This document shows positions 746-62,328 of a DNA stretch of 64,000 nucleotides, in pieces (positions within the stretch are counted from its first letter, which is position 1; each line of letters begins with the position of its first letter). The stretch spans positions 62,001 through 126,000 of the IMG/VR virus record IMGVR_UViG_3300042923_000569. One strand, written 5' to 3'. A program made the translations under genes and the position numbers. Below the pieces are notes generated by a model. That model had not been told where the DNA came from. It did not search any database and saw nothing but the letters and a program-made list of their open reading frames with translations.

Positions 746-1603
746 ATGAATAAGATGAACCCTTTATCAAAGTACACTAAAGTAGAAGTACTTTATACAA
801 AGTTGATAAGTAACAATGTTGTGAAATACAACGAAGGTGTTTTAGTAAATGACACTGTGGAATGTGGCGTTTGTGCACGTTCTGCACGAGATGAATTAAT
901 GTTCAATAACCCTGACGCACTAATGAATGGTGAAGCAGTATCTAGTGTTATTGAGAACTGCGTACCAAATATTGCAGACGCAAGAAAACTTTTTGTTCCA
1001 GATGTTGAACTACTATTGATTGCAATTAAATTAGCAACAAAAGAAACCGAATATCATATTGAAGTAGATTGTCCTGAATGTGGTCATCATGGTGCATTTG
1101 AACGTAACCTACAAGTACTATTAGATAGTGCTGAACTATTAGAAAAGCAACCAGAATTACTATTAGAAGATGTAGGTGGTCTACTTCTTAAATTCAGACC
1201 TCAAACATGGCAGGAATATAATACCTTTGGACAGAATATGTTCCAGCAACAAAAGAAAGCACAGATCCTAGAAAAACGTGATGATTTAACTGATGAACAG
1301 AAAATGGAAGTCTTTAGTCAAATCTTTGAAGAAATGACAAGATTGAGTTTTGATATGATTGTTTGTAATATTGATAGTGTTGAAACTGTAGACGGGAATG
1401 TGATTACTGAGAAGGAATTTATTGCAGAATGGTTGGGTGTACAGCCTTCATTTATTCTCAAACAAATTCGAGAAAAAGCAGATGAAGTCAATAATTGCGG
1501 AGTTTCGCATGAGATGGATGTAGGATGTTCTAAGTGTGATCATGAATGGACAATCGAAAATCTTCAATTTGACCCAAGCAATTTTTTCGTACAAAGCTTC
1601 TAA
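746..1603 (+). CDS. Baseplate hub assembly protein / tail assembly chaperone (T4 gp26-like)
   Basis: ARDELMFNNPDALMNG, D-x-E-LLLIAIK, CPEC and CSKC Zn motifs, C-terminal DPSNFF; GGAG RBS. Confidence 0.75.
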   Translation: MNKMNPLSKYTKVEVLYTKLISNNVVKYNEGVLVNDTVECGVCARSARDELMFNNPDALMNGEAVSSVIENCVPNIADARKLFVPDVELLLIAIKLATKETEYHIEVDCPECGHHGAFERNLQVLLDSAELLEKQPELLLEDVGGLLLKFRPQTWQEYNTFGQNMFQQQKKAQILEKRDDLTDEQKMEVFSQIFEEMTRLSFDMIVCNIDSVETVDGNVITEKEFIAEWLGVQPSFILKQIREKADEVNNCGVSHEMDVGCSKCDHEWTIENLQFDPSNFFVQSF

Positions 1604-1800
1604 TTTCTGAACCGGAAGAAATACGGAAAGAAATAGCAGACCTAAGATTGAACTCGGAAGATATTAAAAGTGGATTGATGGAGGTGTCAGTGTACATAGA
1701 GAACACTACATATGAAACGCTACTGAATATGCCTGTAACCGACAGAGATCTTCTTGTGAAGCAATATAATAAAAAGGTCAAAAAAGAAAATAAGAAATAA
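1582..1800 (+). CDS. -1 frame extension of the gp26-like gene (or a small separate ORF from ATG 1678)
   Basis: -1 frame open from 1573 to TAA 1798-1800 (FRTKLLISEPEEIRKEIADLRLNSEDIKSGLMEVSVYIENTTYETLLNMPVTDRDLLVKQYNKKVKKENKK). Slippery heptamer T TTT TTC at 1582-1588; a terminator follows immediately. Confidence 0.6.
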   Translation, partial: FFRTKLLISEPEEIRKEIADLRLNSEDIKSGLMEVSVYIENTTYETLLNMPVTDRDLLVKQYNKKVKKENKK

Positions 1801-1805
1801 TTAAG

Positions 1806-1830
1806 AACCAGCCATTGTGCTGGTTTTTTT
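1806..1830 (+). terminator. Rho-independent terminator
   Basis: AACCAGC-cattgt-GCTGGTT followed by a T-run, directly after the 1800 stop. Confidence 0.8.
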
Positions 1831-1849
1831 GTATCTAAATTATCTTAAC

Positions 1850-2513
1850 TCTTTAGATTTGCCATTCTTCGAATGTCAAAGAATTTTCGTTGTTCTGTAC
1901 ATCACTAACGTTCTGTACTGAATCAACTCAATTCAGATTTATATCTAATGCATCACTGTTAACGTTACACACTTTATACTGACGAGATTTGTTTCATTTA
2001 TCATCCCCCCACAGGGGAAAGACGTAAAAAAAGCACTTATAAAAGTGCCTAAATTTCTGACGATGATAGTCGTACTTTAATTGTATCGTAAATTTCTATT
2101 TTTCAATAGAACGCAAGCGGGTTGCTCTGTTTCTCGCTATTACGGTCTTATGCAACGGTCGTGGGCTTACCACACTCAGTTTTAAGTCTATACAATCAAA
2201 CTTAAAACCTATCAACTGAAAATGGACGGATTTATATTGTATAAAAACCATCGCATTATTTAACATCAGTTAAATTCCCTTAGCTTTTTGGTAGGGGCGA
2301 TTCCTATATATCTATCGAGGATGTTCTGTCAGCTTAGTGAACATCTTTATAGTGCCGTATTGCCGTGGGTGGTACAAACTATGCCATCTCCTAACGGGTG
2401 TCTTCTGCACTTCGAACTGCTTGAACTTCTCATCTATCCTCTACATTTTCGAGTGAATTAGGTTCTATTTTATCAGTACTTAACAGTACTGCCAAGCAGG
2501 GTTGTATTACTAC
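1850..2513 (-). ncRNA. Candidate large structured non-coding RNA (alternatively an RNA-primed replication origin)
   Basis: No ORF of 60 aa or more in ~790 bp. More than 10 hairpins and long-range stems. Directly downstream of a TGAAACA-N16-TATAAT promoter (2520-2548). Terminator-like hairpin plus U7 at 2050-2026 on the minus strand. Confidence 0.55.
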
Positions 2514-2519
2514 AATCAT

Positions 2520-2548
2520 ATTATACCACAAAAACGTTCACTGTTTCA
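2520..2548 (-). promoter_or_regulatory. Phage promoter TGAAACA-N16-TATAAT (extended -10 TGG)
   Basis: Minus strand reads TGAAACAgtgaacgtttttgtggTATAAT; same architecture as 4 other copies. Confidence 0.75.
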
Positions 2549-2556
2549 CTTTCTTG

Positions 2557-2589: not shown

Positions 2590-3081
2590 ATGAAGAAAAG
2601 ATTAAAAAATCCTAAAGAGGCAGCAGCCTATAGGAACGAACTATTAAAAAAACAAAATGGTATTGATCCAATCATTGGTATTCGCATAACTAAACCCGTA
2701 CTTGATCACCAACACTCAGGTAATCAACATTGTCGTGAAGTACTTCAAAATGAAGTAAATGGATGGGAAGGTAGAGTAGTTAACTCATACCGTAGATGCC
2801 TTGGACATTTAACTGATAAACCAATACATGAAGTACTTAGAAATCTAGCAGACTATATTGAACGTAATGGTAATATACCAGAAGAAGAACAAGTTATTCA
2901 CCATACTGCACTTACAATTGATGTAAAGAAGTTTAAGAACCTACCCGCAGCACAACAATCCTCAATTCTAATTTCTTTTGGAGTAGAACCTGAGTCTAAT
3001 TCATCTAAAAGAGCTAATCAAGCACGGAAACTTATTAAGTCCGGTGATTTGAATATGCTACACATAAAAAAAGGAGCCTAA
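2590..3081 (+). CDS. Recombination endonuclease VII-like Holliday junction resolvase (T4 gp49 family)
   Basis: R..LL..QNG.DPI, PVLDHQH, R.VL...VNGWEG (His-Me finger D-H, N and E retained), LRNLADYIE. Confidence 0.75.
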   Translation: MKKRLKNPKEAAAYRNELLKKQNGIDPIIGIRITKPVLDHQHSGNQHCREVLQNEVNGWEGRVVNSYRRCLGHLTDKPIHEVLRNLADYIERNGNIPEEEQVIHHTALTIDVKKFKNLPAAQQSSILISFGVEPESNSSKRANQARKLIKSGDLNMLHIKKGA

Positions 3082-3095: not shown

Positions 3096-5237
3096 TTATA
3101 GGTCTAATACATCACAGAATTCCATAGTACTAAAACTATCTTCTTTCACAACACGAAGTATTGAGCTTGCTCTGCTTACTAATTCTTCACGGTGTGATAC
3201 AACAAAGATGTTTTTACCACGGACTGCACTTAAATCTTGAAGCATATGCCATGAACATTCAATACCACCGGTATCAAGTCCATTATCCAACAATTCATCA
3301 ACTAATAGTACATTGATTCCCTGATAAAGTGATTCATATGTGTCACGGAATGCTAAATTCAATGCAATAATAACACGAGTTCTTTCACCACGAGACAACT
3401 GTTTGAAATCATATGACTGTCCGTTAAGTTCAATGTCTACACTTAAGTCATTTAGGAATTCAACAGTATGTTGTGAGCCTGACTTATCAATCCAGTACTG
3501 CAATCTTGAATTCAAGAATGAAATATTCTGTTCAATGATACGTCGGCGAACAAATGAGTCTTTATTCATAAGTAGCTTAGCTAGATAATCTTGATGATCT
3601 GATAGTTTTACTAACTTATTGTATTCATCATAGTCAACATGTTGAATTGAGTTTGTTTTTAACGTCTCAATTTGCTCAAAGAATGGATTCTCTGAAGCCT
3701 GTTCACGTTCCAATGATGAAACTAAAGAATTAAATGAATGTTGTAGGTCACGAACCTCATCAGTACTAAAAGTCTCTTCATATTCTTTAATCTCTGTGTT
3801 TTCTAACTCGGTAAATGCAGACATTAGTTCGTCATCATAGATATTAATATCTTCAGCAGTACTTTTCTTGATTAGTTCTTCAAGTTTGTGTTCATGTAGC
3901 TTTGCTTCTGACAAAGTACTATAAAATGTCACTGGTTTAGCTGGCATTTCAAACAATTCCAAATGAGAAACTTCAAATTGTAGAGTTTGTAGCTCTCCAG
4001 TTAGTGTTTCAATCGTGGAAGTAATCTTTTGCACTTCATCTTCTGCTTTCTGCTTCATTACAGAATGATTATCATCATGTTCTAATGAATGTTTACACAA
4101 TGGACACTTACTTTCAGCAATTTCAGCTAGTTTCTGTTGTTCATTCTGCAAATAACCTTCCTGATGAGCAATTCGATCAGTAACCGTTTTAATTTGTTGC
4201 TCTTTGAACCGTTTGGTATTCAATGCTTCTTTAAGTACTTGCTCTTTAAAAACCCAATTTGCTAATTCTTCGTGTAATGCTAACTCGGATGCAATATCGA
4301 ACTTAGAAAGTTCATCAATACTGTTAAGTACTTGTACTTTTTTGGTATGTAATGCGTTAGAATACTCTTCATGCTTAACTGCAAGTTGTGCAACTCGATT
4401 TTCAAGGTTAATACGGTTATTATTGTGTTTAATTGCTTCTTCCATTAATGAAGCTTGTGCAAATAATACATCAAAATCAATATCTTCATAATCACCTAAG
4501 CTTTGAATTAAATCATTGATAGTTTTAGCTTTCTTCTGTTCAAATTCATTAGCTCTAGTCTGTAAAGACTCAATACTTTGAACGATACGCTTGTTTGATT
4601 CAGTAATAGTTTCAATTTTGAACTTTTCCTGATCTGCAAGACGTTTAGTTTCACGGTACATATCTTTAAGTAGAGTAGCTTTCTCGGTTAGTTGGGTAAT
4701 ACCAAGTAGTTCTTCAATCATTTCACGTTGTTTCTGTTGTGAAAGTGATAAGAAAGGTTCTACGTTAGCATTAAGTACTACAATATGTTCAAAGAGTAAT
4801 TGTGATATACCTAGAATCTCATTTAAGTCTTCTTGGGTATCTTTCTTTTCCCCACGAGATTCATCTGCTACTGCTTTCCCATCTTCTAGTGTTAAGAAAT
4901 TAAAAAACGTGGGAGATCTCCCACGTTCAATTCTATATTCAACACCATCTTTCTCGAAATCAATCGTTACTTCACAATTCTTGCCGTTAATCTTGTTTAC
5001 TAGATTAGGGATCTTAATATCATTACTGATACTCTTACCATATAACCCATAAACAATACCTTGAATGATGGCAGACTTACCAACACCATTTCTGCGACCC
5101 GCCGCATCATCACCTACTGATGCATCATTGTTTTGACCTAGTACTAACGCTAGGTCAGTACTATCTAGGTCTAAAACTTGGGGTGCATTACCAAAAGAAA
5201 AGAAATTACGCATTGAAATACGTTTAATAGATAGCAT
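3096..5237 (-). CDS. Recombination endonuclease ATPase subunit (T4 gp46 / SbcC / Rad50-like)
   Basis: Walker A NGVGKS, coiled coils with CPLC zinc hook, signature LSRGE, Walker B LLVDELLD, H-loop VSH. Confidence 0.95.
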   Translation of the reverse strand: MLSIKRISMRNFFSFGNAPQVLDLDSTDLALVLGQNNDASVGDDAAGRRNGVGKSAIIQGIVYGLYGKSISNDIKIPNLVNKINGKNCEVTIDFEKDGVEYRIERGRSPTFFNFLTLEDGKAVADESRGEKKDTQEDLNEILGISQLLFEHIVVLNANVEPFLSLSQQKQREMIEELLGITQLTEKATLLKDMYRETKRLADQEKFKIETITESNKRIVQSIESLQTRANEFEQKKAKTINDLIQSLGDYEDIDFDVLFAQASLMEEAIKHNNNRINLENRVAQLAVKHEEYSNALHTKKVQVLNSIDELSKFDIASELALHEELANWVFKEQVLKEALNTKRFKEQQIKTVTDRIAHQEGYLQNEQQKLAEIAESKCPLCKHSLEHDDNHSVMKQKAEDEVQKITSTIETLTGELQTLQFEVSHLELFEMPAKPVTFYSTLSEAKLHEHKLEELIKKSTAEDINIYDDELMSAFTELENTEIKEYEETFSTDEVRDLQHSFNSLVSSLEREQASENPFFEQIETLKTNSIQHVDYDEYNKLVKLSDHQDYLAKLLMNKDSFVRRRIIEQNISFLNSRLQYWIDKSGSQHTVEFLNDLSVDIELNGQSYDFKQLSRGERTRVIIALNLAFRDTYESLYQGINVLLVDELLDNGLDTGGIECSWHMLQDLSAVRGKNIFVVSHREELVSRASSILRVVKEDSFSTMEFCDVLDL

Positions 5238-6280: not shown

Positions 6281-7127
6281 TTTGCTTCCTTTCTAGCATC
6301 TTCATTTCGATTTCAATTTGTCGTGTATGACTTGGGTTAAAACCATGTAACTCAAGTAAATCATCACGAATATTGCGAACATTCTTTTCAGAATTAAGTA
6401 CTGAACGAAATGCGTTATTAACGAATGAAGTATAATATGCGAAAGGATTAAGCTGCACAGCAGGTTTAACCTTTTTATACAGAATACTTTCTGTAAAGAG
6501 TAGTGCGTTCTTAACTAGTTGAATTCTCGCATCACCCATCATCTCATCTAAGTATGTATAATTACGATAATTAGGTTTGTGAGATATTTCTTCTGCCAAC
6601 TTAATGAACATCTTACCGAGTTCATTTGTTTGTCTCCCATGAGTCATAGAGAAAACTCCATCCTCAAGGTCACCTTTCCAGTGTGAACGTGCAACTTCGT
6701 AAAGCTCACCAGTTTCATCAACAATATAATGTTTAAATGGTTCGAAGTTTGTACGTACTTTCTTTTCGTCGTTAGACCCTTCTACAAAAGGAATGTGTAC
6801 ATTTGTAATGACACGAATAACAACTTCATCGATTGGAACATCTGAAAGTAAAAGGTTGTTTTCTTCTGCGTGCTCTTTAGTTTTCTTGGCAGTGAATGCG
6901 TTAGCCGCACGTATTTTATCAAGTGTACTGGAATTAATGCGTTTGATACGCTCTGCTTTAGCCAGTTCAAGTAATTCTTCAGTAATTTCGGACTCGTCGA
7001 AGACGATGTAATCATACATACTATAAGCATCGTCTAGAACCCAACAGTATGACATTTTACTGATATGAATTTCTCTTAGCAAATCCGCATTGTTCAAGTA
7101 CTTCTTGCGTTTGGGTTTAATTGCCAT
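6267..7127 (-). CDS. Late-transcription sigma factor (T4 gp55-like)
   Basis: YLNNADLL, NYRNYTYLDEM, NPFAYYT motifs; gp55-gp47-gp46 synteny as in T4-like phages. Confidence 0.8.
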   Translation of the reverse strand: MAIKPKRKKYLNNADLLREIHISKMSYCWVLDDAYSMYDYIVFDESEITEELLELAKAERIKRINSSTLDKIRAANAFTAKKTKEHAEENNLLLSDVPIDEVVIRVITNVHIPFVEGSNDEKKVRTNFEPFKHYIVDETGELYEVARSHWKGDLEDGVFSMTHGRQTNELGKMFIKLAEEISHKPNYRNYTYLDEMMGDARIQLVKNALLFTESILYKKVKPAVQLNPFAYYTSFVNNAFRSVLNSEKNVRNIRDDLLELHGFNPSHTRQIEIEMKMLERKQNGTV

Positions 7128-7175
7128 TCAAAATCTCCATGTTTTTATATAAAACGATCCTTGTTTTACCTCTCT

Positions 7176-7204
7176 ATTATACCATAATTTTCAATTTCGT
7201 TTCA
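7176..7204 (-). promoter_or_regulatory. Phage promoter TGAAACG-N16-TATAAT driving the gp55-47-46 operon
   Basis: Minus strand reads TGAAACGaaattgaaaattatggTATAAT. Confidence 0.8.
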
Positions 7205-7207
7205 TAT

Positions 7208-7215
7208 TATAAATA
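7208..7215 (+). promoter_or_regulatory. Late promoter TATAAATA
   Basis: Perfect T4 late consensus upstream of ATG 7244. Confidence 0.75.
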
Positions 7216-7243
7216 CTTGATAATATTTTCACGGAGAACGTTT

Positions 7244-30272: not shown

Positions 30273-30311
30273 CGTGCTCTCCTACGTTTTAATTTTATCT
30301 GTAACTAGTAT

Positions 30312-30340
30312 ATTATATCACAATTTTCTAACCCGTTCCA
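30312..30340 (-). promoter_or_regulatory. Phage promoter TGGAACG-N16-TATAAT for clpA; divergent late TAAATA at 30345-30350
   Basis: Minus strand reads TGGAACGggttagaaaattgtgaTATAAT. Confidence 0.7.
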
Positions 30341-30380
30341 AAAATAAATACAATATAGATTTCTTTTTGGAGATTAGAAA

Positions 30381-55118: not shown

Positions 55119-55153
55119 TATATACACTCCATGTATTATTAATAATTATCTAT

Positions 55154-55182
55154 ATTATACCACAAAAATGTAGTACGTTTCA
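55154..55182 (-). promoter_or_regulatory. Phage promoter TGAAACG-N16-TATAAT driving the operon that ends in thyA
   Basis: Minus strand reads TGAAACGtactacatttttgtggTATAAT. Confidence 0.8.
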
Positions 55183-55222
55183 AAAAATTAGGTCGTCATC
55201 CATAACGACCCGTTATTTATGT

Positions 55223-58046: not shown

Positions 58047-58075
58047 GTTTTATTACATCATTCTTTGATATGGTT

Positions 58076-58104
58076 ATTATACCATAATTTTTTTTAACGT
58101 TTCA
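58076..58104 (-). promoter_or_regulatory. Phage promoter TGAAACG-N16-TATAAT
   Basis: Minus strand reads TGAAACGttaaaaaaaattatggTATAAT; the -35 overlaps the upstream TGA stop codon. Confidence 0.75.
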
Positions 58105-58476
58105 TAAAAATGCAGCAAACAGTTTATTGAAATCATCTCTACAAAATGTAAGCTGTGCTATCACTAAATCGTCTGATAAGTACAAAGTTTCTCCATCAAC
58201 ATAGTATGGAGTGGTGCATATACGGTCTAGTGAGGTAAAGACGCTAGAAGTTTTTTGACTTCGTTTCATGGGAATTGCGGTAAATTCGAAAAGAAAATTC
58301 TCTGAACAAATTTTGAAACCCAATTTACTCAACCTAAGACCACCACCAGTTCTGTAATTATCAAAAATAGATATTAAAATCATTCTATCAGACAAGTCAC
58401 AGTCAAAATCGTAGACTTCTCTGATAGCATTTAATACCGTGTATTGAAATTCAGTACTGTTGGTTTTTGGTATCAT
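58102..58476 (-). CDS. Hypothetical protein
   Basis: 124-aa ORF; GLRLSKLG, LDR....PYY. Confidence 0.65.
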   Translation of the reverse strand: MIPKTNSTEFQYTVLNAIREVYDFDCDLSDRMILISIFDNYRTGGGLRLSKLGFKICSENFLFEFTAIPMKRSQKTSSVFTSLDRICTTPYYVDGETLYLSDDLVIAQLTFCRDDFNKLFAAFL

Positions 58477-61782: not shown

Positions 61783-62328
61783 TTACCCCTTTTTACCAAA
61801 GCCAGCAGACATATATTCTGAATAAGGCTTTTTATCTTTTTTATAACTGTCAATTGCATCTTTTACTACAGTATCCGCACGGCCTTGACCACCAAGTTCT
61901 TCAGCATCAACTTCAGGAACTTCTTTATATTCTGGATCAAGTAAACGTGGCTCGTAATCATCGAATTCGATATCATCTTCAGAATCAGCAATTTCTTCCT
62001 GATAAGGTTCTAAGTTATTTCGAACGTGAAGTAGAGCTTCCGACCATTGTAATAGACTTCCGATTTCAAATAAAAGTACTTGTGGCTGAATACCACGCTT
62101 GCATTTAAAATCAAACATCCAAATCTCACCACAGTCAAGATTGTAAAAATCAATTGGGTTAGATTGGAAAATTGTTTTCTTTAAAGGACCAACTTCAAAA
62201 GCGTCATATCGATCAGTAAGTCGTGCTACGACTTTATGTAATTCTTCGGAGCTTGGCTCACACGCAAATTTTACACGATATGAATATTCTGGAGTAAGGT
62301 CGGTTAATATTTTTTGTAATTTATTCAT
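61783..62328 (-). CDS. Hypothetical conserved phage protein
   Basis: Y.YRVK.A, KKT..Q..P.DF motif; 181 aa. Confidence 0.65.
   Translation of the reverse strand: MNKLQKILTDLTPEYSYRVKFACEPSSEELHKVVARLTDRYDAFEVGPLKKTIFQSNPIDFYNLDCGEIWMFDFKCKRGIQPQVLLFEIGSLLQWSEALLHVRNNLEPYQEEIADSEDDIEFDDYEPRLLDPEYKEVPEVDAEELGGQGRADTVVKDAIDSYKKDKKPYSEYMSAGFGKKG

Follow-up and report, generated by a model that had tools for sequence, protein, structure and literature searches.

The only long ORF-free gap of the analyzed stretch of DNA (the window, 64,000 nucleotides, positions 62,001 to 126,000 of record IMGVR_UViG_3300042923_000569) contains, on its minus strand, what is most probably a gene for a heavily folded non-coding RNA of about 655 nt, belonging to a family that has no match in Rfam 15. 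The element is conserved in all Rak2-like jumbo phages found (62–72 GenBank records) as four diverged paralogs per genome, and full-length copies also occur in integrative islands of Citrobacter, Serratia, Enterobacter, Buttiauxella, Silvania and E. coli chromosomes. In 77 non-redundant sequences, more than 20 helices are kept by compensatory changes, including four supported pseudoknots. It should be noted that conservation, RNA-level pairing, strand, limits, copy number and distribution were established by comparison, whereas transcription, the 5′ and 3′ ends and action in trans are inferred; there are no expression data for any Rak2-like phage in the searchable literature. No description of this family was found in the literature on these phages, on jumbo phages, on large ornate RNAs or in phage RNA motif surveys, as far as open-access papers and preprints are concerned.

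The flanks of the gap encode a T4-type baseplate hub protein (746–1603, plus strand), a small ORF (1648–1800, plus strand), endonuclease VII (2590–3081, plus strand) and the gp46-like recombination nuclease (3096–5237, minus strand). The DNA is 79% identical to Cronobacter phage GAP32 and Pectobacterium phage CBB and matches 68 records of Rak2-like jumbo phages (Mimasvirus, Eneladusvirus, Asteriusvirus and relatives). No ORF of 60 aa or more lies between 1801 and 2589, the longest being 57 aa (2288–2461, plus strand) and 56 aa (2096–2266, minus strand). The 655-nt stretch folded better than shuffled sequences on either strand (z = −4.9 for minus and −4.25 for plus), and therefore a single sequence shows excess structure but does not settle the strand. 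No match at the gathering score of any Rfam 15 family (including ROOL, GOLLD, OLE, raiA, RNase P, tmRNA, 6S, group I/II introns and self-cleaving ribozymes) was obtained in the window or in the paralogs, nor in the bacterial copies at E-values up to 0.1; at E-values up to 10, only noise appeared, the best being 35.7 bits against a gathering score of 54, over the terminator at 1796–1859. ARAGORN detected no tRNA or tmRNA gene in the whole window. A resemblance of CTGACGAG and GAAA on the plus strand to a hammerhead core was rejected, because the spacing is wrong, no Rfam ribozyme matches and the RNA is on the other strand, and for ACAGAGCAACCCGCUU, which seems to resemble RNase P CR-V, no RNase P model matched even at E-values up to 10. 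The following features of the element were distinguished:

2520–2549, minus strand: sigma-70-like promoter with a −35-like GTGAAA (2549–2544), an 18-nt spacer and a TG-extended −10 TATAAT (2525–2520); predicted start near 2513.
1859–2513, minus strand: predicted RNA of about 655 nt, the whole unit shared by phage paralogs and island copies; its 3′ end may reach the terminator at 1828–1803.
2417–2499, minus strand: H1 pseudoknot, 2499–2493 with 2423–2417 (89% paired, 4–6 of 7 pairs compensatory); the 3′ arm is the loop of hairpin H4 (2429–2427 with 2416–2414; 100% paired).
2474–2491, minus strand: H2, a variable hairpin (7 of 7 pairs compensatory).
2437–2455, minus strand: H3, a hairpin with the conserved 9-nt loop GAAAAUGUA.
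2351–2411, minus strand: H5 (2411–2407 with 2355–2351) enclosing H6 (2397–2394 with 2366–2363) and an apical stem (2386–2384 with 2372–2370); H5 and H6 are 100% paired, and H5 has 4 of 5 pairs compensatory.
2282–2345, minus strand: hairpin H7 (2345–2339 with 2326–2320; 7 of 7 pairs compensatory), whose loop (2334–2331) pairs with 2285–2282 (H8 pseudoknot; G-U 28–40 against A-C 0–4), with H9 (2306–2303 with 2295–2292) between them.
2219–2266, minus strand: variable insertion, absent in paralog B and present in paralogs A, C and D, with a hairpin bearing the conserved loop UACAAUAU followed by GAUCCGUCC; 2254–2250 probably pairs with the H9 loop (2301–2297), on qualitative covariation only.
2178–2209, minus strand: H11, a 13-bp hairpin (94–96% paired, 11–12 of 13 pairs compensatory, G-U 223 versus A-C 17).
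2080–2196, minus strand: H12 pseudoknot, the loop of H11 (2196–2190) with 2086–2080 (99.6% paired, 6–7 of 7 pairs compensatory).
2076–2177, minus strand: 3′ core with H13 (2174–2170 with 2164–2160), H15 (2144–2140 with 2091–2087), H16 (2137–2133 with 2117–2113), H17 (2111–2105 with 2100–2094), the H14 pseudoknot (2156–2152 with 2125–2121, in the loop of H16; 100% paired) and the invariant GACCGUU and AACCCGCUU.
2026–2050, minus strand: H19, a terminator-like hairpin plus U7, present in paralogs A and B and some island copies and absent in C and D.
1979–2020, minus strand: H20 hairpin (UUUCCCC-UGU-GGGGGGA) and the near-invariant box AAAUCUCGUCAG, conserved in all four paralogs and in islands; GAUGA (2005–2001) may pair with UCGUC (1985–1981), but these helices show at most 1 compensatory pair each in the 77-sequence set, and the pairing itself is not proven.
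1892–1978, minus strand: AT-rich spacer (28% G+C) of variable length (35–119 nt) with a loosely conserved ACGAAGUGA motif.
1859–1879, minus strand: 3′ hairpin UUGACAUUC-GAA-GAAUGGCAA with a conserved purine-purine mismatch and compensatory changes at 9 of 9 positions, including island copies.
1803–1828: hairpin that reads as a terminator on both strands, ending the baseplate-hub operon (plus strand) and possibly the RNA (minus strand).

The same gap, from the hub operon to EndoVII, was examined in 13 relatives. It is non-coding in the careful annotations, whereas elsewhere it carries only short hypothetical ORFs that differ from record to record, and the alignment shows long invariant blocks interrupted by hairpins whose two arms change together. 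Two relatives have a gene inserted beside the element without disturbing it, namely, a methyltransferase beyond its 3′ end in fHe-Yen9-04 and a 318-aa ORF between the element and EndoVII in Munch. The element is not a singleton in its genome: this was shown by pattern scans of IMG/VR and by blastn, and the 511-nt core finds 265 places in 62 phage records, with four or five per record. In GAP32, the copies lie at about 35.0, 177.4, 261.4 and 340.6 kb of 358.7 kb (designated D, A, B and C, respectively; the window holds A), and all have the RNA sense on the plus strand of the record, which is the strand of most genes. The paralogs are 56–68% identical to one another and cluster by position rather than by phage; the duplication therefore predates the divergence of these genera. 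Copies B, C and D follow a terminator and are followed by co-directional genes, whereas copy A converges on the hub operon. The promoter (TGRRAC-N-TGnTATAAT) is kept in every phage paralog and every bacterial copy and is of the same class as the "divergent RpoD-like" TGAAACG promoters of CBB and GAP32, reported mostly ahead of DNA-synthesis genes (PMC5259590). Within the window, there is only this one copy, the only other matches being to the promoter part, at about 7.2, 30.3, 55.2 and 58.1 kb on the minus strand.

A global RNAalifold fold of the 763-column alignment gave several false long-range pairs and scored both strands alike (−163 versus −151), and it was replaced with column covariation, MAFFT plus RNAalifold on the 5′ domain (31 pairs, 21 of them with compensatory changes) and a curated helix list scored on two alignment sets. 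Most curated helices are 88–100% canonically paired, against 20–50% when the partner is slid by one or two columns. The pairings H1, H8, H12 and H14 cross other helices. A covariance model of the 98-position 3′ core found every copy once and nothing else in 637 kb; on its alignment, 98.6% of cells pair, against 81% in shuffles and 32–62% in slid controls, 11 of 16 pairs show changes on both sides, and none of 500 shuffles reached any measure. Over the curated helices, G-U pairs outnumber A-C pairs (which would be G-U on the other strand) by 466 to 95 in 42–45 sequences and by 869 to 203 in the 77 non-redundant sequences. Together with the promoter orientation, this places the RNA on the minus strand and resolves the mixed G-U evidence noted in the preliminary description.

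The preliminary description, which read the gap as a promoter-driven, ORF-free, large ornate minus-strand ncRNA without tRNA, tmRNA or intron hallmarks, is supported, although not in all of its details. Of the stems proposed there, CAGTACT/AGTACTG, CTGCTTG/CAAGCAG, GATGTTC/GAACATC, GTTTTAAGT/ACTTAAAAC, GTGG/CCAC, TTCTATT/AATAGAA and GCACTT/AAGTGC are supported by covariation. CCCC/GGGG is kept (about 84% of cells paired) but shows almost no compensatory change (at most 1 of 7 pairs), and TTGTA-GTAA-TACAA is specific to this phage and a few relatives. TCGC/GCGA, which is the pairing between the H9 loop and the insertion, covaries by eye (AUCAC/GUGAU, GCCAAA/UUUGGC, GUGCA/UGCAC), as does ATTTAAC/GTTAAAT, but the statistics are weak, and the former did not reach significance in a crude alignment-free test (mean longest run 4.8 against 4.2). 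Two stems are not supported, namely, CACTCGAA/TTCGAAGTG (33% paired) and TATCATC/GATGATA (74–80% paired, at most 3 of 7 pairs with any compensatory type, and broken wherever the 5′ arm changes). The length of about 490 nt proposed from the hairpin plus T run at 2050–2026 also requires correction. This hairpin covaries, but it is missing in paralogs C and D and lacks the U tract in several island copies, while conserved sequence and structure continue about 170 nt further, through H20, the AAAUCUCGUCAG box and the spacer to the 3′ hairpin. Consequently, the conserved unit runs from about 2513 to 1859; in this copy, 2050–2026 may give a shorter isoform and 1828–1803 may be the final stop. Reading the 3′ hairpin as merely the −35 box of a downstream promoter fits paralogs A to D but was rejected, since island copies keep the hairpin, mismatch included, without TTGACA.

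Outside phages, a scan of 185,579 species-representative genomes with a 21-base gapped pattern gave 15 loci, of which six were chance matches and nine are full-length copies (nhmmer E-values from 1e-82 to 1e-122): Citrobacter amalonaticus, Serratia fonticola (complete chromosome), Serratia sp., Silvania hatchlandensis, Enterobacter chinensis, two Enterobacteriaceae, a Buttiauxella MAG and a 2.8-kb contig labelled Clostridium. Two of 5,426 complete E. coli genomes carry it on the chromosome, unannotated. There it lies inside islands of about 11–12 kb flanked by host genes, next to an integrase of either the tyrosine type or the large serine type, and usually converges on a cI-like S24 repressor followed by a Ner/Cro-like gene, whereas in S. 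fonticola it sits beside two ParB/RepB-like genes. The island cargo includes a PADLOC candidate defence gene (PDC-S73, an nSTAND3 NTPase) and AbiGi. The island copies keep the same promoter, helices and 3′ hairpin, and homology between phage and island copies begins at the −35 box and ends at the 3′ hairpin, although the flanking genes are unrelated. The conserved 286-aa island protein has no homolog in 50,697 phage records. The element was not found in any isolated phage outside the Rak2-like group, nor, at blastn sensitivity, in 72,556 plasmid records. Of 85 metagenome pattern hits, 12 were chance matches and 73 were true copies, one of which comes from a more distant T4-like jumbo phage with the same hub synteny.

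Taken as a whole, positions 2549–1859 are best explained as a self-contained gene for a large, pseudoknotted non-coding RNA, most likely acting as a free, compactly folded RNA in trans, alone, as an oligomer or with a host-encoded partner (probability of this explanation about 0.55). That it is a new structured RNA gene is very likely, whereas action in trans, although favored, has only about an even chance, and no activity, ligand or partner can be named. Action in trans is favored because the unit travels intact, promoter included, between unrelated contexts; copy A has no sense gene downstream in the 13 relatives examined except fHe-Yen9-04, yet it is as conserved as copies B to D; most island copies examined likewise have no sense gene downstream; no encoded protein partner is shared; and the density of pseudoknots and invariant unpaired bases is what globular RNAs, ribozymes and RNA assemblies show. 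The G+C content is 40–42% in the core against 26–28% in the flanks. The loop-to-distal pairs are paralog-specific (H12 reads AUUGUAU/AUACAAU in A and C, UCGAAU/AUUCGA in B and UCAUGU/ACAUGA in D) and could be intramolecular or, as in ROOL and GOLLD, intermolecular.

An RNA-primed replication origin, the alternative put forward in the preliminary description, is neither shown nor excluded, although it is considered unlikely. In this model, the transcript would form a persistent hybrid in or after the G6 and AT-rich segment and prime leading-strand synthesis, as ColE1 RNA II or the R-loops at T4 oriF and oriG, which start from middle promoters, do; the four phage copies would be four origins, and the islands would carry one copy so that they are replicated, perhaps only when such a phage infects. 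It is favored by the four dispersed copies co-oriented with the bulk of transcription, the promoter class and its inseparability from the unit, the G6 tract and hairpin followed by the variable spacer (which, however, lies about 535 nt downstream and is flanked by conserved RNA structure), the lack of need for an encoded partner and the absence of a recognisable replication gene from the islands examined. However, absence from the plasmid records at blastn sensitivity argues against a self-sufficient ColE1-type origin, at least four pseudoknots and many invariant unpaired bases go far beyond what known primer RNAs need, structure under selection continues to the 3′ hairpin beyond the supposed transition zone, and the T4 origins are apparently not paralogous to one another. 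Still less likely, although it remains a live rival, is a cis-acting leader, acting on the polymerase that makes it, for example by processive antitermination as HK022 put RNA does, or controlling read-through into the operons downstream of copies B to D or antisense into the hub operon (copy A) or the island repressor. Copies B, C and D do sit directly upstream of co-directional genes after a terminator of the preceding operon, C and D have neither the internal terminator-like hairpin nor an obvious terminator before the next gene, the 3′ hairpin of phage copies overlaps a −35-like box of a following promoter, and in islands read-through would run antisense through the cI-like gene and then sense into the cro-like operon. 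Against this, copy A has nothing to control in the sense direction, the element is about ten times larger than known antitermination RNAs, the downstream genes differ completely between copies and contexts, and island 3′ hairpins lack the TTGACA box.

A purely DNA-level repeat (protein-binding array, packaging or recombination site, or mobile non-autonomous element) or a set of small coding ORFs is essentially excluded, even though several GenBank records annotate small hypothetical ORFs over the element, one calls a copy a repeat_region, and stop-free stretches on the plus strand recur. Compensatory changes keep pairing rather than sequence, G-U tolerance is strand-specific, and positions are syntenic across genera, so the element is not recently mobile in phages. 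The open frames differ in frame and start between sequences, mostly begin with TTG or GTG, lack ATG and ribosome-binding sites and are broken by insertions and deletions, and the recurrent stop-free stretch coincides with the most conserved paired region. A more speculative and rather unlikely possibility is that the family is a new class of RNA machine, either a ribozyme or an RNA-only (possibly hetero-oligomeric) assembly of four paralogs needed by jumbo phages during infection, which integrative defence islands of the same hosts captured as a mimic, decoy or sensor in conflict between phage and island.

Among known systems, GOLLD, ROOL, OLE and raiA are of a similar size class (about 600–800 nt), with many helices and pseudoknots, highly conserved unpaired bases, their own promoter and no obligatory neighbouring protein gene; GOLLD and ROOL are associated with phages and prophages, and GOLLD, ROOL and OLE form homo-oligomeric assemblies (PMC12286853). 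The present element matches none of them in sequence or structure by Rfam cmscan, is found in Enterobacterales and their jumbo phages, has four diverged paralogs per genome and also occurs in integrative islands. ColE1 RNA II and the T4 oriF/oriG primer transcripts are likewise promoter-driven non-coding transcripts of several hundred nt whose promoter belongs to the element, with several dispersed copies per T4-type genome and a promoter class shared with replication genes, but the present fold is far more intricate, there is no homology, and in these sequence comparisons there was no evidence of a hybrid, processing site or unwinding element beyond the AT-rich spacer. HK022 put RNA and other antitermination leaders share with copies B to D a structured RNA made just downstream of a promoter ahead of long operons, whereas copy A and most island copies examined face convergent genes. 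The phi29 pRNA is a phage-encoded structured RNA with its own promoter that acts as a free RNA and oligomerises through loop-loop pairs, but it is 174 nt long, present in one copy in Bacillus podoviruses and not homologous, and no link of the present element to packaging is shown. The ncRNA001–004 of jumbo phage PA5oct, a distant relative of the Rak2-like phages, are ORF-free regions of 236–619 nt whose transcription was shown by RNA-seq (PMC7318152); they show that jumbo phages of this wider clade express long non-coding RNAs but are not homologous, with no nhmmer, covariance-model or motif match.

Large, intricately folded bacterial and phage RNAs are rare, and each one found so far (RNase P, group II introns, OLE, GOLLD, ROOL, raiA) has revealed either catalysis or unexpected architecture. 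The covariation within this family is sufficient to draw most of its secondary structure, and it lives in phages that grow on E. coli, Salmonella, Serratia and Cronobacter. Two features are unusual for a large non-coding RNA, namely, its maintenance as four anciently diverged paralogs per genome and its sharing between lytic jumbo phages and chromosomal islands that carry anti-phage genes. The small ORFs placed on these loci in several GenBank records, and the repeat_region in one, are thus corrected as annotations.

In Yersinia phage fHe-Yen9-04, an adenine-specific methyltransferase gene was found on the strand of the RNA just beyond the 3' hairpin of copy A (positions 1630-2436 of the retrieved sequence L007), whereas nothing lies there in the window and the other relatives; among the cases examined, this is the only one where copy A has a sense gene downstream. 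Insertions between the RNA promoter and the EndoVII gene were found in two phages, namely, a 318-aa minus-strand ORF in Salmonella phage Munch (sequence L011, 2283-3239) and about 250 nt with repeated AGTACT-containing units in Escherichia phage EJP2 (sequence L009, about 2340-2585), and neither of them disturbs the element. It should be noted that three to four short CDS of about 30-70 aa, annotated as "hypothetical protein" and differing between records, were present across the RNA gene in phages 7t3, Kaldavass, and Hallingskeid (sequences L008, L010, and L012, respectively); these are probably over-calls by gene finders. In GenBank record ON568341.1 (Escherichia phage UE-S1), two of the paralogous RNA loci, at about 80.8 kb and at 311.3-311.9 kb, fall under features annotated as "repeat_region", while the terminal repeat of this phage is, according to a 2026 paper, probably mis-assigned (PMC13070987).

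The nhmmer search of the window revealed weak matches to the promoter part of the element only, on the minus strand at about 7170-7218, 30306-30353, 55148-55204, and 58070-58124, that is, further promoters of the TGAAAC-N-TATAAT class, which is consistent with the remark in the preliminary description that this class recurs in the window. In island copies, two promoters of the same (A/G)TGAAA-18-TATA(A/C)T type were found in tandem (3418-3447 and 3482-3511 in the island sequence L078; 7185-7214 and 7710-7739 in the island sequence L088), and in L088 the upstream promoter precedes a 52-aa ORF.

The islands that carry the RNA also carry anti-phage or candidate anti-phage genes, namely, PDC-S73/nSTAND3 NTPase, AbiGi, and DUF4238 (L088:12286-17551 and L087, a Buttiauxella MAG and a JGI contig); the island of E. 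coli LR-29-1 (sequence L086, 15297-20341) carries DUF4326, DUF488, a dual-OB protein, and a resolvase and is inserted beside ffs. An island-type copy nearly identical to the enterobacterial ones was detected in a 2.8-kb contig assigned to a Clostridium MAG (L084, contig DPOH01000171.1, labelled Clostridium sp. UBA10317), which is probably a binning artefact.

Comparative analysis of the phage and island copies showed that the hairpin module with loop UACAAUAU followed by GAUCCGUCC (window 2229-2249) sits in the variable insertion in phage paralogs A, C, and D, whereas in several island copies it sits at the tip of H17 instead (the H17 position in sequences L083, L077, L081, and L086 of alignment A3), so a peripheral module occupies different positions on the same core. 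Paralog D begins with a strong hairpin followed by a U6 run, located directly after the predicted start site and before H1 (for example, in the paralog D sequences L038, positions 6728-6790, L036, and L043); this hairpin could be a 5' stabiliser or an attenuator, and the TTGTA-GTAA-TACAA hairpin of the window (2515-2502) may be a small counterpart of it.
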